Source of the DNA: Amphiscolops sp. MND2022
Taxonomy: Eukaryota
NCBI GenBank assembly: GCA_964187785.1
Contig: OZ076409.1
Span: forward strand, 15,996,001-16,060,000
Direction: 5' to 3'
Length of the DNA stretch: 64,000 nt
Positions 1 through 50,580 of this stretch are shown here, piece by piece; position 1 is the first letter of the stretch; every line of letters begins with the position of its first letter. The notes under the pieces were generated by a model. The model made no database searches. It had not been told where the DNA came from and was given only the letters and a program-made list of their open reading frames with translations. A program made the translations under genes and the position numbers.

Positions 1-346
1 GCATTCAGGGCACTAGGGGTATGTGAACATAGCTGACTACGTTATAATAATAATTCCGACAAAATCAGACACGCGTTTTCAGCTCAGTGAAGTCAATTCG
101 ATTTCAAATTTCAGCCAATCAGATTGCAACATAAAGAAATATTCTTGTTTGAGACCAATTTTTCATTTTCTGCAGTTTGGTACTTCGTCTGTTTGGGAAT
201 TCCCCGATGATTTCAGTTCACGTAGTTTTCTACTCTCTTCATCAAATAGTTTAGTCCACTAAACGGATAGTTTCAGACTTCTTCGTCCTTGTTAAGCGTC
301 TTGGTTTCCAATATGAAATTTTCCATTTCGCCGCACTCGTCTTTAC

Positions 347-863
347 GGATACGGAACAATTTGCCGAAAATTGACTCAGGGACAATTTGCCGAAAGACAA
401 TTTGCCGAAAATTGACTCAGGGACAATTTGCCGAAAATTTTTCGGCAAATTGTCCTTCACGTTAGGCAAATTGGGTGTCGGCAAGTCTTTCGGCAAACTG
501 TCCCGTATCCGGTTTTTGCTCCTGAGAAGCGTTTAAAATAGATTAGGTACTTCATCTCACCTAATATGGGGTCATATACGGTGTATGCACGCTCGCCCTC
601 ACCGTCGCAAAGACCAGCTCCCACTACGATCGCTTCGCGATCTCCGTTCCCGCTAGGTCTTTGCTCCTGTTGGACCTCGCTTAGCAAGATGGGAACATAA
701 GCGGCACCAGGGGGCCACGGAGCACTAGATGAAATGGGGGCATATCCGACGGCCAGAAACAATGTTATTTGAAAACGCTAGGTATTCGGCAAATTGTCCC
801 TAAAAAATTCGGCAAATTGTCCTTCGCGTTGGTAAAATGTTTTTTGGCAAAGTGTCCCTAACC
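347..863. mobile_element. Foldback MITE (TTTGCCGAA subterminal-repeat family) with 9-bp TSD, MULE/Merlin-like, carrying cassette A
   Basis: CGTCTTTAC at 338-346 and 864-872. Left end GGATACGGAACAATTTGCCGAA; right end reverse-complements to GGTTAGGGACACTTTGCCAAA. ACAATTTGCCGAA motifs are tandem on the left and inverted on the right. An additional internal right end lies at 490-510. Confidence 0.85.
583..749 (+). repeat. Cassette A core (also ~2534-2700, ~3240-3397, ~29430-29598, ~43603-43768, ~57776-57940; reverse partial copies ~3890-3965, 30146-30280, 44317-44450, 58489-58618)
   Basis: Conserved GTATGCACGCTCGCCCTCACCGTCGCAA ... GATCGC-TTC-GCGATC hairpin (628-642) ... GC-rich hairpin (GCGGCCCC-AA-GGGGCCGC in the 43.7 and 57.9 kb copies) ... 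GCACTAG(A)NGAAATGGGG(G/A)CATATCCGA. Confidence 0.85.
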
Positions 864-1619
864 CGTCTTTACACAGTAGGTTCAATTCATCAACTTTTTG
901 AGGTCTGAATTCGTTGTAAACTTTGCAATTTAGGAAAGTGTACAACCGTTCCTTCTGAAACTCCACAATCAAACAAGGGTGATGATTTTTTCTCATTTTC
1001 AAGGCGTAATCAATCAGCTAAAAAGAAAGAATTTCCCAAAACAACTTCACAGATCTTGTAAGCTTCGTATTTTGAAAGGCCTAAAAATGGGGTGAATAGA
1101 TTGTAGGTCGGTGTCGTCTCAGGGTGGGGTATATTGGGATCGAATTTTTGTGTGAGCGAAAAGCGAGATCGAAAATGGATCGAAAGTTTTGAGATCTAAT
1201 TGGTCCGTTTTTGCAAGGTTTTTGCTCCTGCAAAGCGTGTAAAATATTTTCTATTTTCTATATTCACTATCAGATATCACGGATCTTCGTCATCAATCAA
1301 ATGCCATGTGTGTCATCATAATGGGAGAAGACACACACCCGTGTTCTGCAACGAAAGGAGGAAACCCCATACCAGCCACTATCCCAATCAAAAACAAACA
1401 ACCAAACTACTCATACCAGCCACAATCCCAGGCGGTAGAAAAAGTTTCAAAAAACCTACAATAATATACAGGTTTGCAAAAAAACGACTATATGTAATAT
1501 ATATCCCCTATTTGCGGGATGATGATTTGGTGCTTATTCATACAGCCGAAAATGAAAATTTGGTCCCATACAGCCGAATTTAAATTACTAGCTTTTAGTG
1601 CTGTTACAGCCAATATGTT

Positions 1620-1850
1620 GGAACTTGATTTATTCACAGGTTCTTTTCTGATCTGTCGGCCACAGCCTCTGTCGATCAGCTCTTTCATGTGAGTCCATTT
1701 CTCACAAGGAACTCGGTGTTGAACATTTTGTGTTCCCAGTGTCTGTCTAAACTTTTTAAAAGCGTTTACGTTGTCACAGCGCACAACTGTTTCTGGCATT
1801 GAATTCCAATCCGCTACTGCAGCGACAGCAAAAAAGTTATATATAAAAGG
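1620..1850 (-). mobile_element. 3'-terminal fragment of a CR1/L2-like LINE ORF2
   Basis: The minus frame reads YNFFAVAAVADWNSMPETVVRCDNVNAFKKF, resembling the NFFS.RVV..WN.LP..VV....VN.FK C-terminus of CR1/L2 ORF2. Confidence 0.6.
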
Positions 1851-1855
1851 TTTGC

Positions 1856-1997
1856 ATATTTGTTGTATGGCTCGGTCGCTTCGCTCCTTTCGCCAAGTAG
1901 CAACATTGAGGCATGGCCACATGACACGTCGCTCCGCTTCTCTTCGCTCCTGCATTCAGGGCACTAGGGGTATGTGAACATAGCTGACTACGTTATA
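1856..1997 (+). repeat. Cassette B (also 1-46, ~10552-10705, ~12970-13083 and ~18965-19081 with an internal deletion; reverse ~29895-30035, ~44066-44206, ~58238-58378)
   Basis: Conserved ATATTTGTTGTATGGCTCGGTCGCTTCGCTCC ... CGCTTCGCTCCTGCATTCAGGGCACTAGGGGTATGTGAACATAGCTGACTACGTTATAA. Confidence 0.85.
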
Positions 1998-2297
1998 ATA
2001 ATAATTCCGACAAAATCAGACACGCGTTTTCAGCTCAGTGAAGTCAATTCGATTTCAAATTTCAGCCAATCAGATTGCAACATAAAGAAATATTCTTGTT
2101 TGAGACCAATTTTTCATTTTCTGCAGTTTGGTACTTCGTCTGTTTGGGAATTCCCCGATGATTTCAGTTCACGTAGTTTTCTACTCTCTTCATCAAATAG
2201 TTTAGTCCACTAAACGGATAGTTTCAGAATTCTTCGTCCTTGTTAAGCGTCTTGGTTTCCAATATGAAATTTTCCATTTCGCCGCACTCGTCTTTAC

Positions 2298-2814
2298 GGA
2301 TACGGAACAATTTGCCGAAAATTGACTCAGGGACAATTTGCCGAAAGACAATTTGCCGAAAATTGACTCAGGGACAATTTGCCGAAAATTTTTCGGCAAA
2401 TTGTCCTTCACGTTAGGCAAATTGGGTGTCGGCAAGTCTTTCGGCAAACTGTCCCGTATCCGGTTTTTGCTCCTGCGAAGCGTTTAAAATAGATTAGGTA
2501 CTTCATCTCACCTAATATGGGGTCATATACGGTGTATGCACGCTCGCCCTCACCGTCGCAAAGACCAGCTCCCACTACGATCGCTTCGCGATCTCCGTTC
2601 CCGCTAGGTCTTTGCTCCTGTTGGACCTCGCTTAGCAAGATGGGAACATAAGCGGCACCAGGGGGCCACGGAGCACTAGATGAAATGGGGGCATATCCGA
2701 CGGCCAGAAACAATGTTATTTGAAAACGCTAGGTATTCGGCAAATTGTCCCTAAAAAATTCGGCAAATTGTCCTTCGCGTTGGTAAAATGTTTTTTGGCA
2801 AAGTGTCCCTAACC
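2298..2814. mobile_element. Second copy of the 347-863 MITE (from the 1,951-bp duplication)
   Basis: Same sequence and TSD, offset by 1951. Confidence 0.85.
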
Positions 2815-3073
2815 CGTCTTTACACAGTAGGTTCAATTCATCAACTTTTTGAGGTCTGAATTCGTTGTAAACTTTGCAATTTAGGAAAGTGTACAACCGT
2901 TCCTTCTGAAACTCCACAATCAAACAAGGGTGATGATTTTTTCTCATTTTCAAGGCGTAATCAATCAGCTAAAAAGAAAGAATTTCCCAAAACAACTTCA
3001 CAGATCTTGTAAGCTTCGTATTTTGAAAGGCCTAAAAATGGGGTGAATAGATTGTAGGTCGGTGTCGTCTCAG

Positions 3074-3536
3074 GGTGGGGTATATTGGGATCGAATTTTT
3101 GTGTGAGCGAAAAGCGAGATCGAAAATGGATCGAAAGTTTTGAGATCTAATTGGTCCGTTTTTGCAAGGTTTTTGCTCCTGCAAAGCGTGTAAAATATTT
3201 TAGGTACTTTTCCCCACCTAATACGGGGTCATATAAGGTATATGCACGCTCGCCCTCACCGTCGCAAGGACCAGCTTCCACTACGCGATCTCCGTTGTGG
3301 CTGGGTCTTTGCTCCTGTTCGACCTCGCTTCGCAAGATGAGAGCATAAGCGGCCCAATGGGGCCGCAGGGCACTAGAAGAAATGGGGACAAATCCGACGG
3401 CCAAAAACATTGTTATTTGAAAACGCTAAGTGTTTGAAAACTTTGATTCCATCTCATTATCGTTGACCTTTTTACTTCGATCTCAGTGACAGTATGCATA
3501 TTCGCGCAAATTCATTCGATCCAAACGCCCACCGCC
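3074..3536. mobile_element. MITE (GGATCGAA family) with 9-bp TSD carrying cassette A; left part also present at 1123-1250
   Basis: TCGTCTCAG at 3065-3073 and 3537-3545. Ends GGTGGGGTATATTGGGATCGAA and (reverse complement) GGCGGTGGGCGTTTGGATCGAA. Repeated GATCGAA/TTCGATC subterminal motifs. Confidence 0.8.
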
Positions 3537-3545
3537 TCGTCTCAG

Positions 3546-6500
3546 TATAACAATTGAGGAAGGAGTTGTCCGAAACTGTCCATCTACGTCTCCACATGAG
3601 TTCGATAAAACGATGAGTTCGTTGATGTTAGCCACCGTGTAAATTGTGCTGTCATCGTTCAAAAGTTTGACGAATCCTCTAAGATGACTCTCTAGGAGAT
3701 TAGCAACACTTTTTTGTCGTAATACCGGAAAATCATGGACAGCTGTGAGAGGATCAGTTTCTAATGGGGCACGGTAATATGTTCTAACGCATAAGTTCGA
3801 ATTTTAATTTCGAATGGACTAAGTTCGATTTTTCCAAAAACCGGAACAAGTTCGAATCACTGTGTGTTCGAAAACGTGCTTCTGATATTTCCCCATTTCA
3901 TCTAGTGCCCCGCGGCCCATTGGGAGCGCTTATGTTCCCATCTTCCGGATATGTTCCCATCTTCCGCATAAACCGGATATGCCTCACATTTCAGTTTTTA
4001 GATTCCTTTAGATCCTAGGCGGCGGAGCTCTCAGGATCTTGTGTGAAGGATGTCCAGTTTACACCGGATATGCCCGATTAGAAAAATCGAACTTGGTGTC
4101 TCGAAACTTATTGCACTAGTTCAAATTCGAACTTAGTAAATCGAACTTAATGCCCGAACTTTTTAATCATTTGACTTTTAAGAGGAACTTGACATTGATA
4201 CTCGAACTCGAAATTTCAACAGGTGGTACGCCCAGTAACTCTTGACAACTTTCAGTATTCGGGGAATAGCTATGGTTGAAAACCGTTCTGATAAACTCAT
4301 TTTGTACTCTTTGAATGCACTTTTTTCAAACCAGTTAGGGGAAGCATATAGAAGGAGGGGAAGAATTGTTACCTTGTAGAGCAGTGTTAAAGTAGGAATG
4401 GTGAGGTTCCATTTGTTGTTACAAAATCAAGATATAGTGTTCCATTTTCGCTTTGTTTTCTCAGCTATTGCTTCTGCATATTGTCGGTATGTTAACTGGT
4501 TGTCAATAGCATTACAAGTGATCTCGTGGGCTTTTGATTTGCCAGGATCACCATTATTCAAAGGGGTTTAATGTCACTTGCTTCACTTTTCGAAAGAATA
4601 AATTCTGTCTTCCTGCCGTTAACCACCATTCTCTAGGTTGAACACTATCTTTCCACTCCAGCACAAGACTGACCAAATTCTCGCGTCAGATCGTCTGTGG
4701 TTTCGAAGTTGACTACAATTGAGCTGACGTCCGCGAAATTGAATGAGCAGTCTTCTTTGAACAGGAAGTCATTGATAAATATGATAAAAAGTAGCGAGAA
4801 ATAGGATAAAAAGTAGCACGCCCCCGTGCGGTACTCCCATGTTAATGGGAAATGTGTGAGATTTATATTCCCCTAAATCAACAAAGACTTGTCGGTTTCT
4901 CAAGAAAGCCACCAAAGTTCGAGTCATTCTGCGAGCTATGTTTTAGTTCCGTAGTTTGTAGAAGTTCGCTTATCCAGACGCTGTCGAAAGCTTTTTCTAA
5001 GTCTTTATTAAGCATGGTTGTGGGAAAGTTTGATGCTTTTGCTCGTTCCAGCGTGAGATGAAGCCTGCACAGTGATCGAACAATTTTTTTCGGTTCTGAA
5101 GTCTTCTTGTTCTTCACCAAGGATGTTGTGCATGTCGAGGTATTTGTTAATTCTATTGGCGAAAATCGTTCAAGAAGTTAACCAAAGTGACTGGAAATGA
5201 ACAAGGGTCGGTAAAATGAACAGTCGTCGTATATGTCTTTGATGGGCTAGCGGATGAAAATAACTCGCGATTCTTTCGAAGGCCATGACGCAGTCTCACA
5301 GCAGTTGTTGATAAAATGGAGAAGCATTTCTCGAGCTTTGTATCACATCGCTTTGATCAATGCCAAGTGTATGCCATCAGTATCGAAGGACATTGGATTT
5401 GATCTCTTTGCGAATGCTGCAATTAGATTTCCATATTAGGTGGGTCGACAAAGAGAAGTTTTTTGTGTTTATCGCTGCTGTCAGGCACTCTGACCTCCTG
5501 TTCGACATACAGAGAACCCCTCGTCGTAAAACTGTTTGAAGAGATGTTGTCCGGAGAAAAAAATTGTTTCAACTTGTGTACAAACAACCCTTTTCGTGTA
5601 AAGAAGTTCACCTGTCTTGTTTCCTGTTAGCCCAACCTCTCCTTTTTTCTTGTTGAGTATTTTTTATACAATTCCCTAAAGTCTCAGCTTCTTTTAGAAC
5701 CAAGATTGCTGAGGAAGCAACTCATCTATATTGAATCACTAGTGGATAGTTGTTCCTTGGAATTCTCTTCAGCTCTTGCCAATTTTTCACCATTTTTGTA
5801 GTTTGAACCGTATTGGAATGTTCTTCTCAATTGTTTAAGGTGTTAACTAGGCTTCGTTAATTCGGAATTCCAAAAAGGTTTGTTGTGTCTAGATATAGTT
5901 CTAAAGGGTATAGACATAGTTCAATCATACTTGAACTGTTTGTTAAAACGAAAGTTGGTTCATCCTTGTTGGTTCACCATAAAATAAGCTTTCATGTTCT
6001 AACAAGATCAATTTTAAAATATTTGACACTATTGTTAACTAAATGTTGTCTACTGAGTTCTACTTTTTTTCTGGCGTAGGTAATTCCTTCTTCGAGTAGC
6101 ATTGCCACTCCACCCAAGCCGTGTTTTTGTTCACGAGTAGCGTTGTAATTGTTCAACCAATTCCGTGGTATATTGGTTCTTGTTTCGTTCAAGGATACCA
6201 CACTGGGATCTTTCTATTGTACAAAATTTAATGAAAGTGTAGAGTGTTGACTTAGTCCGCAGATGTTAATTTGCATGAAGATCAGTTTTCGTTCTTCCAT
6301 TGGTTGGCTTTCGTTGTTTTGTTGAAGTTAAGGGCATTCCCCCAGCTTCCTGGACGGTTTGTATTTGCATGATGTATGCCGGACCATGGACATCACCAGC
6401 CGTGTGGTCACCTTTGCAGTTGTTACACAAAGCAGGTTAGTCTTTGTTGGTACATTTGCCGATTGGCGATGCTACGTTCATCACCGCAATGTTTGCAAGG

Positions 6501-6680
6501 TTCCTTTGAATGACAGTTACTGCTCATGTGGCCAAACGTTTGGCATCTGTAGCATCGAATGATTTCTATGCCTCGTTGTACGAACTCCACGGATTAATGA
6601 AAAAGTGTTAGAAATATCGAGGGAGATTCTGTCAAGTGTTTGAAAGAAAATGCATACAATGAAAATGTGGACTAACTTGA
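3546..6680 (-). mobile_element. LINE Z: degenerate APE-RT non-LTR retrotransposon with triple-CCHC ORF1 end
   Basis: Minus strand: IIRCYRCQTFGHMSSNCHSKEPCKHC (knuckles, ~6400-6560); VSLNET..GGVAMLL (APE, 5992-6201); SFYRP..SSHFG (~5200); KDLEKAFDSVW (~4985); GVPHGG..FIIFIND..FAD (~4730-4840). Many stops and frameshifts. Confidence 0.9.
3766..4210. mobile_element. Foldback element (AAGTTCGAA / TCGAACTT arrays) with a reverse partial cassette A, inserted in LINE Z
   Basis: AAGTTCGA repeats at 3793-3860 and TCGAACTT repeats at 4088-4160. The LINE reading frame stops at ELLGVPPVEI (~4215) and LINE-like sequence resumes below ~3765. No clear TSD. Confidence 0.55.
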
Positions 6681-7029
6681 TTCAAGCAGCGTAACAGAGT
6701 AAATGAATCTAAAACATTGGTGAAAGTGAACATTCACAATTGATTGACGTGAACTCAAAGCGGAATGCGCCTTTTCGGTCATTTCGCAGATTTGCCGTCA
6801 TTTTCACAGAAAAATGCTACGTTTCGTAGAATGACGTTACGTCATCACCACATATGGTACGACTCACGTTGTTGAAATCTTGGAATTTATATGCTTTTCA
6901 AGGAATCTGGCGCTACTAGTATTTCGTATGTAAATCAACCTGTTTATAGCCTTGATATACGGGGTGCTCAATCTATTATGCATCACATCAAATCAAATAA
7001 TAATCAATACAATATTGACTTCTCAAACC

Positions 7030-8330
7030 GTTCCCAATCGTAATCCTGCTCATAGTCCTATAAAAAAAGCAACCAGGAATATGCTGTCAGATGTGGCCCT
7101 GTCATAGAGCAATTTTGAAGGAAACGAGAGTTTCCTTGTTTGTAATGCTTTTGTGTCCGCTTTGATGAATCGTCTCGCTTTCACACTGGGAAAGTTGCTG
7201 TCAAGATGCTGCTCGATTTCAATGTTATCAAGATGTAGGGGTACCACTTTAGTGAGAACGCTATGTTCATTCGTCTTATCATTCGCTTTCCGTACAATTG
7301 AATCTCATCCAAAGACTTCAAGGTTCCAGGATTTCAAGACTATGTCGACCTCTTCCTTTGTGAGGAATCCCAAGTGTGTTTTACCTCGAGCAGCTGTGAA
7401 AGCATAGACTGACTTCTTAGCGGAAAACGTTTTGCGAACATCCTCTTGACTTCAACACTGTCTCTAAACCGCTGTTTTATAGTTATTGTCAAAATCTTGT
7501 CTGGATACCGCGGTGAGCGCTGTTTGTTCTCATTACGAACTTCTTCTTTCAGATCGATTACTTTCGGAATGTGCTGTTTCAGCTACGGTTGCCTAGTGTG
7601 TAGCTGGTTGTGGAACATCCAGTTTCAATTTGATGTTGTGCAAATCCTTTTTTGTCAATTCGGTTAGTTGCGTATCTTATTTTTGTGTTTCAGTGTCTTT
7701 TTTCTGTCCTTGATTTATTTGGTTTAGTGCTTTCCAAACGTTTTATGATTTTCCTTGCAAACTTTTTCTCCACATTTGGTGCAGTACCATTGTACAGATG
7801 CATATTTTGAAAGTAAAGGTATATCGTTCACTTCTATCTCTCCACATGCCACCATATTTGCATCCATTGCAACAATAGGAGTCTTCTTCAGTATCCACAA
7901 TTTTTTCTGGCATTGTGGACATCAGCTATCCGAAGTAGACTGGTTTCAAGACTTAGGCCCCATGAGATTGGATAACTGTCCCAATTAGGCCTCCTAAGTA
8001 ACAAAGGTTTTTGAAGTCCCAACAGAAACAATTTACCAACCTGTTAACTTTGATTTCTTTTCTATTTGATTTTCCTCCGTTTCTTTTCCGATGGCTTTTA
8101 TCTCTTCTTTTTCTCGGGCTTGAAGTTGGACAAACAATTTCTGTTTCTCCAAATTTTTAACAATAGTTTGTATTCTAGGTCTACTTTCAGGTGAATTCTT
8201 CTCAGTCCGAATGAAAGCGCCCTTCTGTTTCCGATGTGAAGTCAAATTTGTCGTCACATCAGTTATAATGATGCGATTTCTGTCCCAGAGCGCTAATAAT
8301 AAACTATGTCGTTTATTGTAGTTTGCCACT
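7030..8330 (-). mobile_element. LINE W: 5'/ORF1 fragment of the same PHD-CCHC clade
   Basis: PHD-like CPQCQKKIVDTEEDSYCCNGC..WWHV..WHCTKC (~7780-7915, frameshifted). SVLTKVVP..KARRFIK..KLSFPSK aligns with LINE X ORF1 SVLIKYV..KAQRFIK..KIDFPSK. Confidence 0.75.
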
Positions 8331-8869
8331 GTAAAAGGATTTCAATCAGTTGGCTAGTCGTACAAGGTTGGTTGTTGTTGCTTTTATGTGCCGAGATCGA
8401 GATATTGATTATGTCGTGCAAATTTTCGAATTTCTGCATTTGCTGATAATTCTACGATTCAGAAGGTTCTGTAATAATTTAAGCTACTTCTGGATTTGCT
8501 ATTGAAACTCAGTCCAGGCAGAGAATAACAGTAACGTCTGGAGAGTTGTTGTTGCCGTTAGGGGACGGAACAAAGTGTACGGTCATGTGAGCTGGCAACG
8601 ATTTTAAATACCATAAAAGAATGTATGAGATGATAAGTATGGATGATCTCGGAAGGTCAGTAGAAATAGAATGGACTAATCTGATTCGCGTATTGTTGAT
8701 AAAGACCAACAGAATCGCCCAGACACCCGAGAGTGTTGACAGTCCTGCCCCAATTGTCAGAGTAATTTCCAGGCCCCACAGTGATTTCTAGTGTAATCGG
8801 ACAAATCAAATCAATCAGTACTTCTCTGAAAATATTTTAAAAATAAATTACAGCAATTAGGCTTGCTCA

Positions 8870-9330
8870 TATGTAAAAAATTTCTTCAAAAGCGTCTCTG
8901 TCGATCACAGTTCCCAGAACACAGGCGGCATTGCCGATCTGAAGAGCCATTGAAATAAAAAGTACCAGCTCGTTGATCGGCTCGCAAACGACAGAGCGTT
9001 TCAGAGACGCGTGATGAAAATTTCACAGCTGTTGCCTAAAGAATCCTGTACTTTCATTGCCACTGGTTGAAAAAGTGTCCACTATCAATTAATTTGCGAT
9101 ACCTGAAATTTACGCGCTTCAGCCTCGGTGGCTGTGGTTCCCCGTTTGCATAAGGAGAATGGGTGCAAGAGCATTCACAAGCGTGACATCCCACACCAGC
9201 TGTTTACCGATTTCACAAGGAATCATGGTAACACCGTTTGGGCGTTTGACCTCAGTCCAAGATGCTCGAGCATTGAAAGCGAGTCATCATTATGAGCGCA
9301 GAAGTTGAACTCAAACAGTCTATGCAAGTA
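8870..9330 (-). mobile_element. 3' fragment of an RLE-type (CRE/R2-like) non-LTR retrotransposon
   Basis: The minus strand reads SMLEHLGL..KRPNGVTMIPCEIGKQLVWDVTLVNALAP..ATEAEARKF.YRKL..FFQPVAMK..SLG....ISMALQIGNAACVLGT..FEEIFYI*. This resembles the KRPDG..WDVT..PVA.ET.G..QRGNAACVLGT restriction-like endonuclease region of CRE-type elements. Confidence 0.75.
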
Positions 9331-10355
9331 AACGCTTTCGCTTCAATGTGTCACGATAAGCGCTGAGCGTATAGCCGGAAGAAGAGGTGGAGAAACCAAA
9401 AGCCTGGATATAGATTAGTGACGAATCACCAAAGCGTTATCCCACTTTGCCTCCAAAGGGTTGCCGGTCCCGAGGAGGGGAACCGTCTTACATGACGTTC
9501 TCTGGGCCTGAGTCCAGTATGTAACTGCTACTAGTTACGGGCATTATGCTGAGCTTCATAACCACCGCAGATGTAGCTTGGAAAAACTGGGTTGTGGGAA
9601 TACTGAATTTACCTCAGACCGGGAATCCACAAACCAAGTAAATTACGCCATGTAATGAAAACAATTGCTTCCAAGCATATCAGTCTAAATACACCACACC
9701 ACATAGCACACAAAATTACAATAATTTAGTCAGTTTCAGTGGAAATCCAGATCGTCAGCACGCGAGCGCTCGAGCTGGGCATAACTCCGGGCACGGTTGG
9801 ATACCACAAGCAGTCATCATGGGTACGGGTTCCGCTACTAAAAATGACATTATTTTTGGGGTTGGGGTATTTGGACAAACACCGTTTTTTGGCACATTAT
9901 AGCTGTTATTTTTCAATTTTTTCTCGTTGGTGGTCTCACGGGGCAGCTCTGTCTCTTTTTGCATTGATCGCAGCGGGAAGTACTTTGTCCAAACATGCTC
10001 AAGGTGCCACGACAATTTCGTTGATTGGCGTTTGCCGTTACAATAGGTCGTTTCAATTGTTCTGGAGTAGAGACCGGTCTTTTGGGGATTCCTTGCAAAC
10101 AGGTTTTCAGAAACCGGCGTGAAACCCTTATCTAACCGATCAGCTATATCAATGTCGCAGCCTAGTGCTCGTGTTGGCGCCGGAGAGTAGCAATAGATGA
10201 TAAAACTTTCCAGCCATCTTCGAAAAAGTAACTGTTCTAAAAATTGTCATACTATAGAACAGTCATGTAAACATATACATGATGTCTTACTAACAGCATT
10301 GCTGAGCTATGTTTACTTTTTACATCATAGAGCACTTACGTAGAAAATCACGTCA

Positions 10356-10845
10356 CGGTCAAAAATCACTTGGCCGTAAGTCATTTAATTGTCTTTCGTT
10401 TAGCATTTTCAAGCCAAATAACATCAAAGTTTGGCCAAGTCCATTCTAACTTAAGAAATTGCTTAAAACAATTTTTTTAAGAGCAAAATTGAATTGAAAT
10501 TTTAACGAAGTGTTTGAGCATCAACAACAAACAAAAGTTACGAAATGTTTAGCATATTTGATATATGGCTCGGTCGCTGCGCTCCCTTTGCCAAGTAGCA
10601 ACAATGAGGCATGCTCATACGGAACATCGCTTCGTTTTGCTTCGCTTTGCTTCGCTCCTGCCTTCCGGGCACTAGGCGTATGTGAACATAGCTGACTAGG
10701 TTATAATGATAACTTCGATAAATAATGGGTAACGACCCGAGACATTTGGCTTGAAAAAAGTAAGCCAAGTGACTATATGTATCAAAGCCAAATGACTCTA
10801 AGCCAAGTGAATTTATTGCGAGTGACCAATTACCAATTTAAGATA
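10356..10845. mobile_element. Foldback MITE (TCA(C/T)TTGGC / GCCAA(A/G)TGA family) carrying cassette B; paralogues ~12780-13250 and ~18778-19246
   Basis: Left TCACTTGGC..TCATTT motifs, right tandem AGCCAAATGA/AGCCAAGTGA motifs ending GACC, with cassette B in the middle. No TSD recognised. Confidence 0.6.
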
Positions 10846-25199: not shown

Positions 25200-28100
25200 G
25201 TATGTACTTTCGTTGAATAGCCAACAAATGAGTGACAGTAACAAAAAAAGTCAACAAAATAAGGATATGGATGAGTTGCCCTAACACTATTGGAAACGGG
25301 CCGGCAATTTGTTGCGACTCCTGTGAAAAATGGTTCCATGGCAACTGCGTAGGACTCACTCAACTACAGATTGATATGATAAACGAAACTGAAGGAGTAA
25401 TGTGGTTGTTGAGACAGTTCAGACCGACAGTGAAAACGACAATCCAATCAGGGTTGGCAAACTTGAATCTTGATTGTGAAAAAAAACGTCATGACGATCA
25501 AAGACATGGTCGCAGATGGGATTGCACGAAGCAAATTTTTGAAAAAATAGAAGGCATTCAGGAGGATCGTACTGCATGCGAATCAATAGTTACTGGCCTG
25601 AAACCTAATTTGGTGGCGGTGAAGAGAAAAAACCAACAGCACAGCAATACACTAACGCAACACAAAATGACTTACGCAGCCAAATGCGCACCCACGCTAT
25701 CCGATCCTACGGAAAAGAAAGCCTCGTGGTCCGAAGAAATATCGAGCAGATATTTCTTGTGGAAAACTCATACAGCGGCCTTGCCAACTGTATTGATATC
25801 AAAAAGGCGTACGCCAAACATTTCCCAGATAAAAAACTGATCCACGCGTTCAGGAACAGTAGAGGAAAGATCCATGTAAAATTCGATTCCGCAGCCACAG
25901 CAGCGGATATAATGCAAAATTTGAATAAAAGTGTCATAGGTACAGATACCTGTGTTACAAACCCCAGAGGAAAACGCCGGCAAAATGCTATAAATGTAAG
26001 AGGAGTCCACACAGGAATCATCAAAGACGCTTTCGGAACAAATCTCAGCGCAACTCCACACATACATTGAAAAGGACACAATCGGACGTTTCATCAAAAA
26101 ACCTGATAATGCCAGAATGACTACAGTGAAAGTTGACTTACAAGAACGAACTATGCTAGAAACAGCGTTAGCAAACGGACTTTTTGTCAACCAGCTATTT
26201 TTCAGACCTACCGAATACATCGAGGAAACAGATATTCACGTGACCAGATGCTTCAAATGCCAGAAATTCGGCGAAAGAGCATCATCTTGCAAATTGGGTC
26301 AAAAATGTGGTAAATGCGCGGAAAAGCATAATACCGATAGCTGTCACCAACTGGAACAAAATTACAAATGTGTCAAGTGTCTGGAACAACTCTCTTCAGC
26401 ATCAAAAAAATGCCCTGTCTACCTGAAAACTATGGAGAGGTTGTATCAGAGCCGATCGGTACCCCTACTAAAACAATTACAAGGCAAAATTGACATACTC
26501 ATCACCGAATACCAATGGTCTGCATAAGGCAAGTAAATATGCCAGGGTTAAGCACTCATAGCTCAACCTCGTTATCCCTTTATATGAACCAAGGAAAGCC
26601 CCGTGCTGTGATATTAACGGAGACTCACCGAGAACTAGCAGCACATGAATTCAATAATTTTTCTGCCATTAGATATTGTGGGACGATCGGTCGTGGAAGA
26701 GTTACTATTTTGATCAGGAAGGATATCACACACGTACCGGAAATCTTCAAAGCCCTAATTTACTCTGCCCAGATCAACGAATGAGCACGGCAGAACTCTA
26801 GTAAACGCACTACACCACTCCTCCAGGATGCTTAAATGTCATCAACGACGGACAACCCGCGTTTATGTCAACAACGGGAGCAGTGTTATCGACCTCTTTA
26901 TCACGTCAGAGAGAATAAGTGAAACTACAAACTTCACAATGGTTGACCACGAAACAGAATTACCCACTGGTGCTCCGACGAGGGTACGCCTTCCCGTATG
27001 CTGAACAAGAAATAAGAAGACGCAAAAACAGTCAAACTTAAAAAAGACAGGAAGAACGCCAATTGGGAAGGATTCTACGAGTGTGTAGAAAACCTTCAAA
27101 CAGATGGGAAAGATTTCAAGACAACTGACGCTGATTCTTCATGGTTGCTACTGAAAGAAGCGGGCAGAACAACATATTTCGGTGAAGAACGTCTGTTGCT
27201 TTTCGAAACTGTATTGGTGCGAAGAATTCAGTTCGAAAAACTGAGAGCTCTGTAAGGCACGGAGAAACTACCGATACTGTGGCTCGGTGCAAAACCTCAA
27301 GCTTTTGAGTGAGCTTCAACAATCTTTTCAAAATATGGTAAATGATAAAGCAACTGTATACTTCAAAAGCTCCATCTAAGATGTTAACGACATCCACTCA
27401 AAGGAGTTTTGGAAGCGTGTGAATAAACTTCTGAAAGATAAGGTAGGTGCTGGAGTTTCCAAGTTGTTGAAAGAACAAATTTCACTTTGCTGCAAAAGAC
27501 CAAGCCGATTTATTCCGTTATAATTGTTCACTCGAAAACATTTGGAGAAACTCAGCTTCAACGAAGATTTCAAGCTACACGTAGAAAATACGTTCCAACA
27601 ATCTCTACATTCTCAAAGACTCGAAATAGAAAGTGACAGGTAGTTTAACTGCGACTTCACCTTCGAAGAACTGGAATACGTTCTGCGTTTGTTGAAAACA
27701 TTGGAAAATCTCTCGATAACGACAAAATCCATCCCAAAATGAGTAAGTACACAGGACCCCGATATAAAGATGTCCTTTTTCACATTGCAAACAGAACACA
27801 AAACGGAATCATTCAAAAGTGATGTTTCTGATGAAGCAAGGTAAAACAGACTACATGACACCATCAGTGTATCGGCCGATAACAATCTCCAGCTATACCG
27901 GAAAAATTGTGGAAAGATTATTGAATGCCAGGCTGAGAAGCTCTTTCAAAAATTTCAACCTGATAGACGAAGAGAAGGAAGGCTTCCAGTATCACAAAAC
28001 ATAGTAAGGTTGTTGTATAGGTTGAAAATGGAATGTCAAGAAGTGTGAGAATCAGCAGGGAAAGTGGTGCCTTGAAATCCATCGACTTCGAGAAGGCCTT

Positions 28101-29258
28101 CAATTCCGTATGGATCAATGGACTGCTCCAAAAACTCTATCAATCGGGAGTTAGAGGTGAATTCATTAAACTGATTGAAATTATTTTGAAAAACTGTAAA
28201 CTCAGCATAGAAATCGGTAATCTGAGAAGCCAATACTTTGGAGCCAAAGATGGACTCCCACAGGGTAGTGTGTTATCACCAATTCTGTTCATTTTTTCGT
28301 TTCTTACATGTTCAAAAACATCAGCTGTAAGAAGTTCAAAATCGCTGACGATGGAAACCTCCTAGTGACAGGAGACACTGAAACTCAAGTCTATCTGAAC
28401 TGTCAAATCATTCTCAAACAACAGGAACCGTGGTGCAAAAATTGGAGGATCGCAGTCAATGGTGACAAGACGTCCATAATCAACCTCGACACTGAGAACA
28501 CGCACGCCCGGAAGTTTTTCGGCGAGGCCAGCATGGTCACCAGAAACACAAAAATCCTGGGTTTGATTGTGGACAACAAACTGAATTTCCACGAACATCC
28601 ACAGCAGGTAGAAGGAAAAGTTGCTAAACAGCTGAACTTATTCAAAATGTTTTGCGGGGTCTAAAGCAAGCAACGCTCATAAAGCTTTACAAAACTGTAG
28701 TTCCCCTCCCCCTCCCCCGATTTCTGTACGCGGCCCCTGTGTGGGCCAGGAAACACGTTCAAGCTTCAAGCACTTAGCCGATTCCAAAACACCGCGCTCA
28801 AACTTATCATAGATACGAGTACGAAATCCGACAATTGGTAGCCGAAAAACTGTGCGGTCTCCCGCCTATGCAAATACAAATGGACATTATCACTATTAAA
28901 TTTGGAATCAATCTTTCTCAACAGCAAGAAATTTTGTGGAAACTGTATCGGAAATGCCAATTGCAAGAAATTAAAAAAATAAAAACCTCATTGACGATTT
29001 TTATAAAGTGACAGGTGCAACAAATTGTTACACGGTGTCAACTTGCCACGAGTACCTGAGAAGTAGATGGAACAGTATATTCAAAAACGCGCTCACGACT
29101 ACCCCCTCTGGGTTGACCAATCACTCAAATTGAATGGAAAGGGGTTGCCTATCCAAAAACGACAAGCAGACACCTAGAAAGAACCACCAACAAGCTCCTT
29201 TTGAATTGCAACGTCGAACTGGCACAAGATGCGTACAAACTTTGGTGTACAAAATATT
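25200..29258 (+). mobile_element. LINE Y copy 1: degenerate element of the same clade, head-to-head with X
   Basis: CCDSCEKWFHGNCVG (PHD); RCFKCQKFG..CGKCAEKH..C..CVKC (knuckles); QVNM.GL..ILTET (APE); KTDYMTPSVYRPI, IDFEKAFNSVW, GLPQGSVLSP, ADD (RT). Confidence 0.92.
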
Positions 29259-29768
29259 GGGTGGCTGTAAATAGGTCGAATTTTTCTGGTCGAAAGGATT
29301 GAGGTCGAACCTTTTGATCGAATTGCAGGGATCGAATGGAATGCGCTCGAAAATGATCGAACCCTTCGGGTCGAAAACGTTCTTTGTTTGCCTCATGTCG
29401 ATTGACTATCATAATGTGGGGCATATGCTGTGTATGCACGCTCGCCCTCACCGTCGCAAAGACCAGCTCCCAATACGATTGTTTCGCGATCTCCGTCCCC
29501 GCTAGGTCTTTGCTCCTGTTCGACCTCGCTTAGCAAGATGGGAACATAAGCGGCCCCAAGGGGCCGCGGAGCACTAGAGGAAATAGGGACATATCCGAGA
29601 CACGTTTTATACTTTTCTAGGAAATTCTATCTGCGGCAATTCGATTTGTTTCCCAAAAATCAAAATTTGAATCCGAGTTGTTTCGATCCCATTCAAATAA
29701 TTGGTATGTCGACCCGAGGACTAACTCTGATTTTCGAACCCGTTTCTTCGACCTATATCCGCCCACCC
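29259..29768. mobile_element. MITE 1 (AGGTCGAA family) carrying cassette A; copies at 43431-43940 and 57603-58112
   Basis: Left end GGGTGGCTGTAAATAGGTCGAA; right end TTCGACCTATATCCGCCCACCC. Flanks CAAAATATT / CAGTATATT (7/9 match). Confidence 0.8.
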
Positions 29769-29786
29769 CAGTATATTATATAAAGC

Positions 29787-30136
29787 GGGTGGGCGGAAAT
29801 AGGTTGAAAGAACGTGATCGAAAATCAGAGTTAGTCCTCAGGTCGACATGCCAAATTTTTTGAATGGGATCGAAACAACTCGGATCGAAATTTTTATAAC
29901 GTAGTCAGATATGTTCACATACCCCTAGTGCCCTGAATGCAGGAGCGAAGCGAAGCGGAGCGACGTGCCATATTGCCATGCCTCAATGTTGCTACTTGGC
30001 GAAGGGAGCGAAGCAACCGAGTCATACGACAAATACGATAAAATTCGACCGCATTCCATTCGATCCCTGCAATTCGATCAAAAGGTTCGACCTCTGTCCT
30101 TTCGACCAGAAAAATTCGACCTATTTACAGCCACCC
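29787..30136. mobile_element. MITE 2 (same family, opposite orientation) carrying cassette B, exact 9-bp TSD; copies at 43959-44307 and 58131-58479
   Basis: ATATAAAGC at 29778-29786 and 30137-30145. Ends GGGTGGGCGGAAATAGG.. and ..CCTATTTACAGCCACCC. Confidence 0.88.
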
Positions 30137-30527
30137 ATATAAAGCTTGGGGCCGCTTATGTTCCCATGTTGCTAAGCGAGGTCGAACAGGAGCAAAGACA
30201 TAGCGGGACCGGAGATCGCGAAGCGATCGTTATGGAAGCTGGACTTTGCGACGGTGAGAGCGAGCGTGCGCACATCGTATTTGACCGAGTTACATGGTTC
30301 ATATAGACGGACCCATAGAACTTGCCACAGGAAATATCTATTCACTCACTTGGACCACGAACCTAATAAAGTTCATCTTAGATTCTGGACGTTTTGAAAG
30401 TAGAACAGAAAGGAAACGGCACTTTCGAAAGAGAGTACTCAACTACTGAAGACTCATAATTTCTGAGGCTATGACTAACAGACCTTCAACTTTTACTTTA
30501 TTTACACAGAACCGATACCATGTGCCT

Positions 30528-30583
30528 AAAACGTTATAAACGCTCGTCGTTATAAAGCACTCCGTTATAAACATCCCCTACTG
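30528..30583. mobile_element. Probable solo end of a TA-targeting (pogo/Tigger-like) MITE; repeated in units 2 and 3
   Basis: Three CGTTATAAA motifs followed by CATCCCCTACTG|TA (reverse complement TA|CAGTAGGGG..). No partner end found. Confidence 0.35.
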
Positions 30584-33162: not shown

Positions 33163-36100
33163 AGGCGAGAAGCCATCTTGTTTGTGGTCAATTAAGGGGT
33201 TATTCATTAGCAAGATTTCCAATCTGCTGTTTAGTTTCCACTCAAACACGTTACCAACATGACTGCTCATGCAGATAGGTCTATATGCAGAGGGATCAGT
33301 ATAGTCTGGTTTAAAAGGTTTCCCTATGAAAAGAACACGAGATTCAGTCCACGGCCATACCTTATTTGTTAGGCAGGAGTTGAAAAGATTCATTAGACCT
33401 GTACGGAATTTTGGGCCAGATTTGAAAATCATGTTAGGGTGGAAGTTGTTTTCGTCAAATGAACACGCTGTGTTGTGAAATTTGTTGATGACGTTATCAA
33501 GTTCATGCATCTGGAAACTTTCAATATATCATGCAATATCCCGTTCTTGTTTTTGCGCGAGCTGGTTAATGAGTTCAATTTGTTGATTCGTTGTTTGCTC
33601 AAAATTTTGGTCAAAATCCTTTTCATTCAAATGCTTTCCGCTAAAAAAGTGTCCATGAGTACATGGGCGTGTTCTGTGGCTGCGAAGCAAAGTTCTTATT
33701 TACATTTTGGAGGAGCAATCATCGTGTCTCTTTCATTAGAAAAAACCTTTTCGACGTTTTTTCTAAAATCATTTCCGTGATGGGTATTGTTCAAACCTTG
33801 CCGTTTCTTTTTATTCCAGATAGTTGCTGCTGTCTCAATTTCTTTTTTGAATTTTTCGCGAGCGTCATTCAGAGTTGCACGATTTCCTGGAGTCGAAGGA
33901 GGTTTGAAACGTTTTCGAAGCTATCTTAAGGTGTTGCTTAAGTTTGTAAGATGCGTGTTCCAAAAGGGCTTACTATATACTGAGCAGATTTTGGTTGGGA
34001 TGCATAGCTGATTTACTTCTTCCAGTAACTTGCTAATTGTCAGTCATGTTTCATCAGGGTTATTGTATATCGGGTTTGCAGGGTCCGGTAACTTACTGCC
34101 TTCTTCTTCCAAAGCTTTACGCCATCTGTCCCAGTCAGCGTTTTCCAGGACAAATTTAGTTTCTCTTATGTTGCTTCTGATTAGTAAGTCCAAATTTACA
34201 TGTACCGGTAAATGTCCTCTATTTGGATGGCCAGTGAACAGCTCGATTTCAGTATCCGTGTAACGAGAGAAATTCCAGCTGGTTATACTGCCCGATATGT
34301 TGAATAAATCAATAATGGAGGCTCCGTTAGCTGCGTAAAATGTATATTCGCCATCATTTAGAATGTTCACCTCAGGCTTTCGACGAATAGTTCCAGCATT
34401 TCGCCACTCTTATTGCAACGTATATCGCCCCACAAAAGACTTCTAGCAATTAAATCTCCCACGAAGACAACTCCCGTCAAGTTGCTTCTATGGGCACAAG
34501 CTCTTGCATTTTCCAGTGAAATAAAGAGGTCTTTAATAGAAGCTTCGGCGTTTGGAGGAATGTATGCAGTTTCTGAATGAAGGATTTATGACCAAGGTAC
34601 ACTGCGCACAAGATTGAGTCAAATAGTTTTCCCGGAAAGTCAGAATTTCACAGCAGCTTCCGTCTTTAGGTAAAAGAAGGGCAACCCCGCCATGATGGGG
34701 AAGCTGATGATGGGAAATCGTTCGATAATTTTTGAAAATGTCATGCGAAATCCATTGTTTGGTTTTGTTTAGTGATATGAAGTCGAGTTTCATGTCAGCT
34801 ATGTATTTTTCGAGTGCATTTCGTTTTGCGTTTGACAGTTCGGAGGTGTTTAGCTGCATGAATGAAAGTTTCTTCACTTCAGCAATTTCACGTTTTTCAG
34901 TCAATCTTCGCATGTAGGCAACTTGAAATGGTAAATTACGTTTTTGTAAATTTTGGACGCATGATTAAGATCAGTTTCACAGAATGGGTTGTTAGCACTG
35001 TGGTTCAAATGACTATTCGCGCATTTAGCTGCATTTTCGCATTTACCGATTTGATGCTGGTTAGCGCATTTGCCACATTCAGGAAGGCTTTTGCAGGTTT
35101 TATTTACATGCCCAAAAGCTTGGCAGTTATAACACCGAATTATTGAGATCTTTTGTTCTTCGCTATTTTCATATGCTCGAAAGTGTTGATCAATCAGGAA
35201 GAGTCCTTCAGACAATGTTTTTTCTGGTCTTTTTTGCTTGGAAAGTCAATTTTCACAGTGTTCAAAACACTGTTATCATTTTTGATGAATCTTTGGGCTT
35301 TGGCTCTAGAAAATTTTTCTTCGAGAAGTGTAGTTAACACATCCGTGAATTCTTCTGCTTTAAGCACGTATTTTATCAGAACCGAGTGATTTTTTCGACT
35401 TGTGCGAGGTCGTCTGCAAATTATTTGATGTCCAAGAAAACTCGGTTGACACTCCATTACGATTTTTTTAACTCTTCCCTTGATTCGAATTCGAGGTGTA
35501 AGTGTTCTCTAGTTGTTCTGAAAGCACGCCGCAATTTTTTCTAGGGGAAACATTTAGAGAAGCTTCGCTTAATATCGGCGCTAATTTTGTAGGAGGGATC
35601 AGCACTTTCAAATATAAGTATCGAAGATATGTCACGTGGTATGGAGGTTTTGATTATATTACCTAGTTTTGTACTCCCGGTTGCAGCTGCGGTTGCGTAC
35701 GTAGAAAACATTTTCTCTACCACATCTTTGACCGAATTTATCTTTGGTAAAAATCCCTGTGCTATTTCGTTGATCAACGGCACCATTGCAGTGAAATTGT
35801 CATTTAGTTTCATGATACTTTGTGTAGCAACAGTTGTAGTATTGGCGGTGGAGTCTAATTTGGTTGAGTTGCACTGTAGAAGTGTTCGATGATCTTGATT
35901 CATATCTATTAGTACGTCGAGTTTCTTGTCTATTGTCTCTAAACCTTTGGGTTTGACGTCTTTTTTTCATGACTGGGAGGTTTTCTTTGCAAAACCAAAG
36001 GATAGATTCAATCCTATCCATTGCCTCGATTGTTGTTTCTGCTATTTCGGTGAATTTTTGATGAAACCAGCGTTCGCATGCTGTATATTCGATTGCACTC

Positions 36101-36410
36101 GTTCCAGATACAACAGGGTTGTTGCATGAACCGCTAGAATCAATGTGTTCAGTAGTTGAGATGGTACGGTCCTTTTTGTTTTTGGAGGGCTTTTTCCTAC
36201 CCACACAAAGGCTGCTTCAAGATAATTAAATCTCAAAAGCTGCCCCTGTTCACTTCGGAAACATGGATGGAACAGGTCACCTCAGTTAACCTTCGATATC
36301 TTCTTGTTGCACTTTATTTTCCGTTTTCTCGATAGTTTTTTCAAGACGAGGCTATAGACTGCTGATTAATTTCGTAAGATCGTTGAGATAAAATTGCACT
36401 CCAGTACAGG
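33163..36410 (-). mobile_element. LINE X copy 2 (3'-truncated in RT); extra 5' fragment at 38279-38930
   Basis: Paralogue of 21546-24790. Confidence 0.9.
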
Positions 36411-39400
36411 CCAGGGGTGGAGTTTTTTATTTCCAGAGCAAATTCAGGTCCTCTCTTCTTTCGCTTAGATTGAAGTTTCGTTTTTGCGTTATTAAAGCTG
36501 ATATCAAGTTGCCGGAGATATTCGTAAATGCTTGGGGTACCAAATCGTTGGCAGTAAACAATTGCAATGAAATTCTTTGTGTGCTGCGTCAGTATTTCCA
36601 CAAGCTCTACTGTAGAGCGTGCGGTATGATTGTTGCTTTTATGTCTTGTGATGCATGCTGTTGTTGATGGCGTCGTGTCAGCAGACAAGGTTTTTCCTGT
36701 TTTTGGAACCAACCATCTCAGAGAAGACGGAAGAAAGCCCAAAAAACAGTCGCCTGTTGAATGTAAGTAATTAAACACTATTCAGCTTAGGCGCCTTAGG
36801 GACTTCAGTGTCTCAGTATGTACCTTCGTTGAATAGCCAACAAATGAGTGACCGTAACAAAAAAAGTCAACAAAATAAGGATATGGATGAGTTGCCCTAA
36901 CACTATTGGAAACGGGCCGGCAATTTGTTGCGACTCCTGTGAAAAATGGTTCCATGGCAACTGCGTAGGACTCACTCAACAACAGATTGATATGATAAAC
37001 GAAACTGAAGGAGTAATGTGGTTGTTGAGACAGTTCAGACCGACAGTGAAAACGACAATCCAATCAGGGTTGGCAAACTTGAATCTTGATTGTGAAAAAA
37101 AACGTCATGACGATCAAAGACATGGTCGCAGATGGGATTGCACGAAGCAAATTTTTGAAAAAATAGAAGGCATTCAGGAGGATCGTACTGCATGCGAATC
37201 AATAGTTACTGGCCTGAAACCTAATTTGGTGGCGGTGAAGAGAAAAATCCAACAGCACAGCAATACACTAACGCAACACAAAATGACTTACGCAGCCAAA
37301 TGCGCACCCACGCTATCCGATCCTACGGAAAAGAAAGCCTCGTGGTCCGAAGAAACATCGAGCAGATATTTCTTGTGGAAAACTCATACAGCGGCCTTGC
37401 CAACTGTATTGATATCAAAAAGGCGTACGCCAAACATTTCCCAATAAAAAACTGATCCACGCGTTCAGGAACAGTAGAGGAAAGATCCATCTAAAATTCG
37501 ATTCCGCAGCCACAGCAGCGGATATAATGCAAAATTTGAATAAAAGTGTCATGGGTACAGATACCTGTGTTACAAACCCCAGAGGAAAACGCCGGCAAAA
37601 TGCTATAAATGTAAGAGGAGTCCACACAGGAATCATCAAAGACGCTTTCGGAACAAATCTCAGCGCAACTCCACACATACATTGAAAAGGACACAATCGG
37701 ACGTTTCATCAAAAAACCTGATAATGCCAGAATGACTACAGTGAAAGTTGACTTACAAGAACGAACTATGTTAGAAACAGCGTTAGCAAACGGACTTTTT
37801 GTCAACCAGCTATTTTTCAGACCTACCGAATACATCGAGGAAACAGATATTCACGTGACCAGATGCTTCAAATGCCAGAAATTCGGCGAAAGAGCATCAT
37901 CTTGCAAATTGGGTCAAAAATGTGGTAAATGCGCGGAAAAGCATAATACCGATAGCTGTCACCAACTGGAACAAAATTACAAATGTGTCAATTGTCTTGA
38001 ACAACTCTCTTCAGCATCAAAAAAATGACCTGTCTACCTGAAAACTATGGAGAGGTTATATCAGAGCCGATCGGTACCCCTACCAAAACAATTACAAGGC
38101 AAAACTGACATACTCATCACCGAATACCAATGGTCTGCATAAGGCAAGTAAATATGGCAGGGTTGAGCACTCATAGCTCAACCTCGTTATCCCTTTATAT
38201 GAACCAAGGAAAGCCCCATGCTGTGATATTAACGGAGACTCACCGAGAACTAGCAGCACATGAATTCAATAATTTTTCCCTGTGCTATTTCGTTGATCAA
38301 CGGCACCATTGCAGTGAAATTGTCATTTAGTTTCATGATACTTCGTGTAGCAACAGTTGTAGTATTGGCGGTGGAGTCTAATTTGGTTGAGTTGCACTGT
38401 AGAAGTGTTCGATGATCTTGATTCATATCTATTAGTACGTCAAGTTTCTTGTCTATTGTCTCTAAACCTTTGGGTTTGACGTCTTTTTTCATGACTGGGA
38501 GGTTTTCTTTGCAAAACCAAAGGATAGATTCAATTCTATCCATTGCCTCGATTGTTGTTTCTGCTATTTCGGTGAATTTTTGATGAAACCAGCGTTCGCA
38601 TGCTGTATATTCGATTGCACTCGTTCCAGATACAACAGGGTTGTTGCATGAACCGCTAGAATCAATGTGTTCCGTAGTTGAGATGGTACGGTCCTTTTTG
38701 TTTTTGGAGGGCATTTTCCTACCCACACAAAGGCTGCTTCACGATAATTAAATCTCAAAAGCTGCCCCTGTTCACTTCGGAAACATGGATGGAACAGGTC
38801 ACCTCAGTTAACCTTCGATATCTTCTTGTTGCACTTTATTTTCCGTTTTCTCGATAGTTTTTTCAAGACGAGGCTATAGACTGCTGATTTATTTCGTAAG
38901 ATCGTTGAGATAAAATTGCACTCCAGTACAGGCCAGGGGTGGAGTTTTTTATTTCCAGAGCAAATTCAGGTCATCTCTTCTTTCGCTTAGATAGAAGTTT
39001 CGTTTTTGCGTTAATAAAGCTGATATCAAGTTGCCGGAGATCTTCGTAAATGCTTGGGGTACCAAATCGTTGGCAGTAAACAATTGCAATGAAATTTTTT
39101 GTGTGCTGCGTCAGTATTTCCACAAGCTCTACTGTAGAGCGTGCGGTATGATTGTTGCTTTCATGTCTTGTGATGCTGTTGTTGATGGCGTCGTGCCAGC
39201 AGACAAGGTTTTTCCTGTTTTTGGAACCAACCATCTCAGAGAAGACGGAAGAAAGCCCAAAAAACAGTCGCCTGTTGAATGTAAGTAATTAAACACTGTC
39301 TATTCAGCTTAGGCGCCTTAGGGACTTCAGTGTCTCAGTATGTACCTTCGTTGAATAGCCAACAAATGAGTGACCGTAACAAAAAAAAGTCAACAAAATA

Positions 39401-50300: not shown

Positions 50301-50580
50301 CGCTAGAATCAATGTGTTCCGTAGTTGAGATGGTACGGTCCTTTTTGTTTTTGGAGGGCATTTTCCTACCCACACAAAGGCTGCTTCAAGATAATTAAAT
50401 CTCAAAAGCTGCCCCTGTTCACTTCGGAAACATGGATGGAACAGGTCACCTCAGTTAACCTTCGATATCTTCTTATTGCACTTTATTTTCCGTTTTCTCG
50501 ATAGTTTTATCAAGACGAGGCTATAGACTGCTGATTTATTTCGTAAGATCGTTGAGATAAAATTGCACTCCAGTACAGGC
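47331..50580 (-). mobile_element. LINE X copy 3 (3'-truncated); extra 5' fragment at 52450-53100
   Basis: Paralogue. ORF 49711-50373 encodes the PHD-coil part of ORF1 uninterrupted. Confidence 0.9.

Follow-up and report, generated by a model that had tools for sequence, protein, structure and literature searches.

Two abundant cores within miniature inverted-repeat elements of different arm families in a 64-kb window of the Amphiscolops sp. genome

Analysis of a 64,000-nucleotide stretch of contig OZ076409.1 of Amphiscolops sp. MND2022 (positions 15,996,001 to 16,060,000 of the forward strand; hereafter the window, numbered from its first letter) indicated that two short sequences, core A (~180-190 nt) and core B (~150 nt), lie in the middle of small elements with terminal inverted repeats (TIRs) whose arms are of several kinds. 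We consider it fairly probable that these elements form a clan of non-autonomous MITEs (miniature inverted-repeat transposable elements) in which the abundant cores are modules of recombination and re-arming and not separate cassettes. The habit is a real and rather unusual one among transposons, and its closest precedent is CMITE in Acropora (PMC2872659). An earlier note on this DNA had offered two readings, a mobile cassette that targets MITE interiors and a modular system in which a functional core is re-armed with different ends. The modular reading fits a swap of A and B between two elements of one arm family, the occurrence of the cores in unrelated arms and the remnants of old arms next to them, while the function ascribed to the core is putative.

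Exchange of cores between arm families

The element at 29259-29768 (+; A4) carries core A and the element at 29787-30136 (-; B5) carries core B, and both have arms of one family, as the earlier note had proposed. A4 has AGGTCGAA/GATCGAA arms with the terminus GGGTGG, an A core at 29412-29601 and a target-site duplication (TSD) of CAAAATATT/CAGTATATT that matches at 7/9 positions. B5 has the arms of A4 in inverted orientation, a TSD of ATATAAAGC (9/9) and a B core at 29890-30042 (-). Alignment of the two elements in the same orientation revealed left arms that were 95.8% identical over 95 nt and right arms that were 87.5% identical over 112 nt; between these arms A4 carries ~290 nt made up of extra inner arm and A, and B5 carries ~165 nt of B.

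In B5 the left-hand arm homology runs as far as ...GGTCGAA and the right-hand one begins at TTCGATCC..., and both joins sit in a short CGAA/TTCGA motif that is common to most arm families here. In all other B copies, equally far from the core, the left side has (T)ACGA(A/T) and the right side has TTCGA(T/C). The presence of these B flank motifs at the joins of B5 suggests that B was transferred along with the innermost repeat of the arms it had before.

Comparison across arm families showed that the A cores are 84-92% identical and the B cores 82-93%. Between unrelated arms, the identity of a given core is 88-92%. The core of A4 and that of the element at 347-863 (A1) are 92.2% identical over 180 nt in a gapless alignment while their arms do not align, and the element at 3074-3536 (A2) has arms related to those of A4 while the two cores are only 86.5% identical. 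The groupings given by arms and by cores disagree, and simple descent of one family is thereby ruled out.

Remnants of former arms were identified in the element at 10340-10830 (+; B2), which has GCCAARTGA arms (TCACTTGGC) and a B core at 10546-10710. Its inner flanks keep GTTACGAAATGTTTA and TTCGAT, which are remnants of CGAA-type arms. The GTTACGAAATGTTTA directly left of B in the copies with GCCAARTGA arms is also the majority left flank of B genome-wide, as seen from loose ends at 1854 in contigs of four runs, and this flank indicates that pieces of an older CGAA-type shell lie inside the newer shell.

Element A1 (+) has TTTGCCGAA arms and a perfect TSD, CGTCTTTAC, at 338-346 and 864-872 (9/9). 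Within this one TSD it is a composite of a left arm (L), a right arm (R'), an extended A core at 511-795 and a second, more diverged right arm (R''); the part at 347-511 is a complete core-less L+R' foldback whose termini are 92% complementary. A1 shows that alternative ends are able to enclose and move extra material. Element A2 (+) has GGATCGAA arms, a TSD of TCGTCTCAG at 3065-3073 and 3537-3545 (9/9) and an extended A at 3168-3443, within which A proper lies at 3219-3401. Extended A is 285 nt long in both A1 and A2, with sharp edges and unrelated arms on either side. The composite structure of A1 and the features of the swap fit models of ectopic gap repair and macrotransposition, from which the P-MITEs of Anopheles were proposed to arise (PMC1562414), and of ectopic recombination or conversion, as in the chimeric copies of Galileo that combine TIRs of the same subfamily with a foreign centre (PMC3573991).

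Arms, core kinship and abundance

All copies of the cores that had been named in the earlier note were recovered in their places by BLAST and profile searches of the window. Core A is found at 562-753, 3219-3401, 29412-29601 and 30145-30294 (-), with a duplicate of the first copy at 2513-2704 and a partial copy at 3879-3947 (-). Core B is found at 1848-2002, 10546-10710, 12965-13090, 18962-19087 and 29890-30042 (-), and the tail of the copy at 1848-2002 is present again at 1-51. The borders previously drawn for 347-863, 3074-3536, 29259-29768 and 29787-30136 proved exact, each pair being flanked by a 9-bp TSD (9/9, 9/9, 7/9 and 9/9, respectively).

The elements are 350-630 bp long and have the features of MITEs, namely GG-starting TIRs, 9-bp TSDs on five elements, small size, non-coding sequence and many copies. 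One of them, at 1529-2155, contains a stretch like an open reading frame whose meaning is doubtful. Their arms are ~100-200 nt long with dispersed 7-9-nt repeats and one 41-bp duplication (x2), and GGGTGG... and GGATACGG... are among the termini. Of the five arm families that had been regarded as unrelated, the TTTGCCGAA and GCCAARTGA arms are indeed distinct, but the GGATCGAA, AAGTTCGAA and AGGTCGAA left arms align with one another (z 8-9 against shuffles) and have in common a terminus of the GGTGG type as well as nTCGAA repeats at intervals. More widely, the nCGAA repeat and GG-starting termini are common to four to five arm types. The label of foldback given to these elements is apt only in part: the complementarity of the arms is short or modest and, for 3074-3536, not above shuffles, while the whole of 29259-29768 folds with z -2.5.

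A TSD of 9 bp lies within the range of Mutator and Mutator-like elements (MULEs), 8-11 bp, a superfamily to which Foldback and Phantom belong. Merlin TSDs are 8-9 bp long, so the TSD length leaves Merlin possible. The TSDs of FB and Tetris are 8-10 bp long (PMC4079207). Judged by TSD length and termini, the clan is probably Mutator/Foldback-like and possibly Merlin.

Kinship of A and B, which the earlier note had taken from motifs, is likely and falls short of being established. The block CTTYGCTCCTG-N19-ATGNGAACATA is common to A and B and collinear, with 12 occurrences in the window against 0 expected, and the 5' and 3' motifs of the earlier note are likewise common to both cores. Local pairwise alignments of A and B gave z 2.5-5.2 in the forward orientation only, dinucleotide shuffles reaching the score in 0-11 of 500 trials, and z -0.8 in the reverse orientation. 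Profile hidden Markov models (HMMs) built from either core gave no match to the other, even when the filters were switched off and the database was tiny. Because profile HMMs are blind to the relationship, homology of A and B is argued from pairwise statistics and collinear motifs.

To gauge abundance, contigs from four runs of one organism were collected at >=80% likeness on positions 1800-4500 (2.7 kb, four elements), where 15,000-27,000 contigs per run were found. Summed contig depth, which is not a copy number, was ~2.1 million over the B core, ~1.4 million over the A core, 20,000-120,000 over the arms and a few hundred to a thousand over the unique flanks, so that core depth is 10-100 times arm depth here. 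By these figures, no arm family in this region is nearly as widespread as the cores. Loose ends of low agreement were observed at the core edges (1848/1854 and 1996-2016 for B; 2520 for A, which equals 569 in the first copy) and fall into several edge classes.

Explanations of the arm and core pattern

The architecture we propose is arm - core - arm, with A and B far commoner than any single arm family; the cores would be passengers that have become the common currency of the clan. Exchange between elements would occur through gene conversion, through ectopic recombination or through a switch of template while a gap is repaired, with joins inside the common cores or the adjoining CGAA/TTCGA repeats, and would place different cores in the same arms. 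Re-arming would begin with nested or adjacent insertions followed by the use of alternative ends: a core that still has inner parts of its old arms could become enclosed by the ends of another family and would then move with them.

Several points weigh against this proposal. The microhomology at the B5 junctions is only 4-6 nt and its motif is common in the arms, so that it could be a coincidence. Only about eight independent copies are present in the window. TSD length and termini are all that the superfamily call draws on. Conservation of the cores above that of the arms could also mean a cis function in transposition, which the proposal does not need. Finally, an allelic empty site that keeps one copy of the TSD was not observed. 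A contig joint from 3073 to 3565 (2-3 contigs per run), which would speak for mobility, starts exactly at the left border of A2 and suggests paralogous or allelic DNA without A2; it skips 491 nt, however, and not 472, which is 19 nt beyond a clean empty site.

Vertical descent from one ancestral MITE is an unlikely alternative, though one with several observations in its favour. The core would have been kept as an aid to transposition or amplification (an enhancer or a binding site), while the arms would have tracked diversifying transposases. The cores are better conserved than the arms, the nCGAA repeat and the GG-starting termini recur among the arm types, and ATGGGnnCATAnnCG is present in three direct copies within A with a related motif bordering B; because ATGGGnnCATAnnCG is repeated inside A, the 3' end of B can be aligned to either the middle or the end of A. 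Internal sequences that alter MITE mobility have also been published (PMC9921582; discussed in PMC2872659). However, A and B on the same arm family demand exchange beyond descent, the TTTGCCGAA family includes an L+R' foldback that lacks a core, and the function of the core is putative. Folding of the cores as single-stranded DNA gave z -1.3 for A and z +0.4 for B, which is no better than shuffles, and the idea of a structured core is therefore without support from the window.

Rather improbable, too, is a reading in which the cores are a module that acts in cis, for instance as an enhancer of transposition or of repair templating based on the ATGGGnnCATAnnCG repeats, such that an arm family which acquires a core amplifies better. 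If this were true, selection would have the core as its true unit, which would hop from one transposase system to another, and the clan would be a DNA-transposon counterpart of the CORE-SINE principle, in which SINE stands for short interspersed element.

The other reading of the earlier note, that A and B are parasites of MITEs which home into MITE interiors by an insertion mechanism of their own, is very unlikely. The high abundance of the cores relative to any arm family here, the near-central position of the core in four elements and the end motifs shared by A and B would agree with it. However, the cores lack flanking direct repeats that differ from host to host, and the perfect TSDs flank whole elements. 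The core edges are not fixed, A extending over 285 nt in two families and over ~180-190 nt in another and B showing several classes of loose ends. In addition, the unit exchanged in B5 includes inner arm repeats with joins at CGAA microhomology, and the foldback at 347-511, the only one seen that consists of arms alone, does not represent an empty target.

No more credible is the capture of a satellite, in which each core would be one unit of a tandem repeat (~130-170 bp) that MITEs had taken up, as in MITE-like elements that bear tandem repeats. Direct copies of GGGGnCATATnCG ~168 nt apart bound A, extended A contains an internal partial duplication (GGTYTTTGCTCCTG...ATGGGnnCATA twice), and the variant core of the element at 3766-4210 (A3) has a 19-bp x2.3 repeat. 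However, no tandem array of A or B is present within the 64 kb, and no joint that goes back ~168 nt is found among the best-supported contig joints listed.

Least probable of all is a small RNA gene or a SINE-like retroposon inside MITEs, for which short hairpins (GGCCCCAAGGGGCC and GCGAAGC-type) and, by our own reading by eye, a loose likeness of GTTCGACC in A to the B box of RNA polymerase III (pol III) could be cited. No family was matched at the cores by Rfam at gathering thresholds (whole window) or at E up to 5 (1-4500), ARAGORN found no tRNA there, the folds are those given above, and the cores have no A-rich or LINE-like tail (LINE, long interspersed element) and no target duplication round them.

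Two candidate features of A were rejected. A pol III B box at GTTCGACC is supported by no tool. Helitron and Helentron elements have no TIR or TSD and end in a hairpin followed by about 10 nt and CTAG; the GGCCCCAAGGGGCC hairpin of A is followed by 8 nt and CTAG, but the conserved core runs >20 nt further, and both TIRs and 9-bp TSDs are present on the elements.

Among known systems, CMITE of Acropora comprises six piggyBac-type MITE families with a 75-nt interior that is better conserved than the TIRs; one copy bears the interior of another family, and the origin of the core is unknown while a role in transposition is suspected (PMC2872659). As in CMITE, families with different ends share an interior more conserved than those ends, the cores here being 84-93% identical across arms that align weakly or not at all. 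The two systems differ in that CMITE elements are ~100 bp long with TTAA TSDs, CCYT termini and one 75-nt core in ~1,600 copies, while the present elements are 350-630 bp long with 9-bp TSDs, GG termini and subterminal repeats, and have two cores of 150-190 nt at far higher abundance. The 60-mer consensus of CMITE gave no match in the window.

Foldback types (Drosophila FB, Tetris, Galileo and TU) resemble the clan in having arms of short repeats around a non-repeated middle and in TSD length. Their TIRs extend over hundreds of bp to kb, their copy number is low to moderate and their middle is usually variable, whereas the arms here are ~100-200 nt long and pair weakly and the middle is the conserved part. 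Galileo further resembles the clan in the swapping of centres, and the TU elements of sea urchins are reportedly modular, one class having a common middle segment (Hoffman-Liebermann et al. 1985). Capture as in P-MITEs or Pack-MULEs likewise yields an interior foreign to the ends, from an ectopic template or by enclosure between two ends; each of those families has its own unrelated interior, while the same two interiors recur across many families here. CORE-SINEs, and other SINE superfamilies that have a central domain in common, are said to have a conserved central module with interchangeable heads and tails that recruit different mobilising machineries (Gilbert and Labuda 1999). SINEs are retroposons whose head is of pol III type and whose tail derives from LINEs, whereas the present elements are TIR- and TSD-bearing DNA transposons and show no pol III features. 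No paper describing the A/B core was found in the literature. A metagenome scan with the block common to A and B gave 0 matches, and of two scans of viral contigs one gave 0 matches and the other one chance-level match (L001).

The interiors of MITEs are usually seen as family-specific junk, while in this clan the interior is conserved, is the most abundant part and is traded between families with different ends. If the core helps amplification, selection on a non-coding module could be tested across transposase systems, and such help would explain tens of thousands of core copies. If the core is passive, the clan would still be a clean record of how MITE families are assembled, by swaps at short repeats, by the enclosing of old elements within new ends and through composites that keep spare ends. 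Annotation of this genome needs repeat libraries in which arms and cores are built separately.

Remaining elements and layout of the window

A further probable element, B1, lies at 1529-2155 (+) and adds one shell to those described in the earlier note. It has ACAGCCGAA arms, a B core at 1848-2002 and a TSD of TGATGATTT (1520-1528) and CGATGATTT (2156-2164) matching at 8/9 positions. The contig depth drops just after ~2160, which is consistent with the right border of B1, and its right part is duplicated at 1-204. An open reading frame (ORF) of 155 codons at 1488-1955 (-) crosses the B core into the left half of B1. Its stretch ADWNSMPETVV...NAFKKF may be the C-terminal end of a LINE ORF2; the ORF gave no Pfam match and has no second copy in the window.

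The earlier note had also placed core A within the element with AAGTTCGAA arms, A3 (3766-4210, -). The last ~70 nt of A (3879-3947, -) and an A-like 5' motif (GGGCATATCCGGTGTA) are indeed present, but together with an unrelated middle and the 19-bp repeat, so that A3 has a variant core, and its borders and TSD are unconfirmed. No TSD was found in a search around A3, nor in one around the elements with GCCAARTGA arms. Near A3, contigs join 3610 to 4169 across 558 nt (2 contigs per run), and a separate repeat family extends from ~4169-4172 to at least 4455; because of this joint and this repeat family it is uncertain where A3 truly begins and ends.

Elements A4 and B5 lie in opposite orientation with abutting 9-bp TSDs (29769-29786) beside a truncated core, A5, and together make a long imperfect palindrome in which 29258-29359 and 30036-30137 are 94% complementary. 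A5 (30145-30294, -) is an older copy, broken off in the middle of the GGCCCCAAGGGGCC hairpin, that keeps the first ~150 nt of A; it was in place before the two neighbouring MITEs landed. It may belong to an element that ends near 30580. At 30530-30580 three CGTTATAAA repeats are followed by a ...CATCCCC terminus (GGGGATG on the other strand), which may represent a further arm type, that of A5. The word CGTTATAA in this region is also part of the conserved right flank of B.

Two more B cores, B3 (12965-13090, +) and B4 (18962-19087, +), are associated with the GCCAARTGA arms. B3 has a 28-nt internal deletion and arms and flanks as in B2, and lies in a repeat unit of at least 1.5 kb. B4, beyond an assembly gap, is a segmental copy (90.7%) of the region that holds B3. 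The repeat unit has the MITE with GCCAARTGA arms at its left end and is interrupted by the assembly gap; it is present in three copies (10275-11792, 12678-14018 and 18675-20038), of which the first is ~63% identical, with gaps, to the others and the last two are 90% identical to each other. Since >1 kb of flank is in common, the three TCACTTGGC-arm B copies represent one insertion that was copied with its surroundings. A 26-bp tandem repeat (2.3-2.6 copies) is found at 14032-14098. The assembly gap (17444-17766) lies between repeat units and touches no element with A or B, and no claim made here needs continuity across it. The sequence to its right matches 11622-12188 and 14157-14707, while that to its left is unique.

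The window is eukaryotic, with ~40% G+C, rich in transposons and much duplicated. A 1951-bp tandem duplication (1-1250 and 1952-3201, 99.8% identical) produced a copy of A1 at 2298-2814 (+), which is not an independent insertion. This duplication has its junction at 1250/1251, which is 34 nt inside the extended A of element A2 (GGATCGAA arms), and the left part of A2 is present as a truncated duplicate at 1123-1250. The region 12256-14189 resembles 18251-20162 (90.7%). From ~21.5 kb on, tandem units of ~14.1 kb (~98% identical) are present in at least three copies and repeat the cluster at 29-30 kb at 43-44 and 57-58 kb, with segmental copies of A4 at ~43431-43940 and ~57603-58112 and of B5 at ~43959-44308 and ~58131-58480.

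Pfam analysis of ten ORFs in the window identified only reverse transcriptase fragments (21387-21893 and 42472-42987) and an ORF with a PHD finger (25232-25840). The 14.1-kb units also contain an extra 2.5-kb duplication, in which 35754-38278 corresponds to 38277-40801 and 49924-52449 to 52448-54972.

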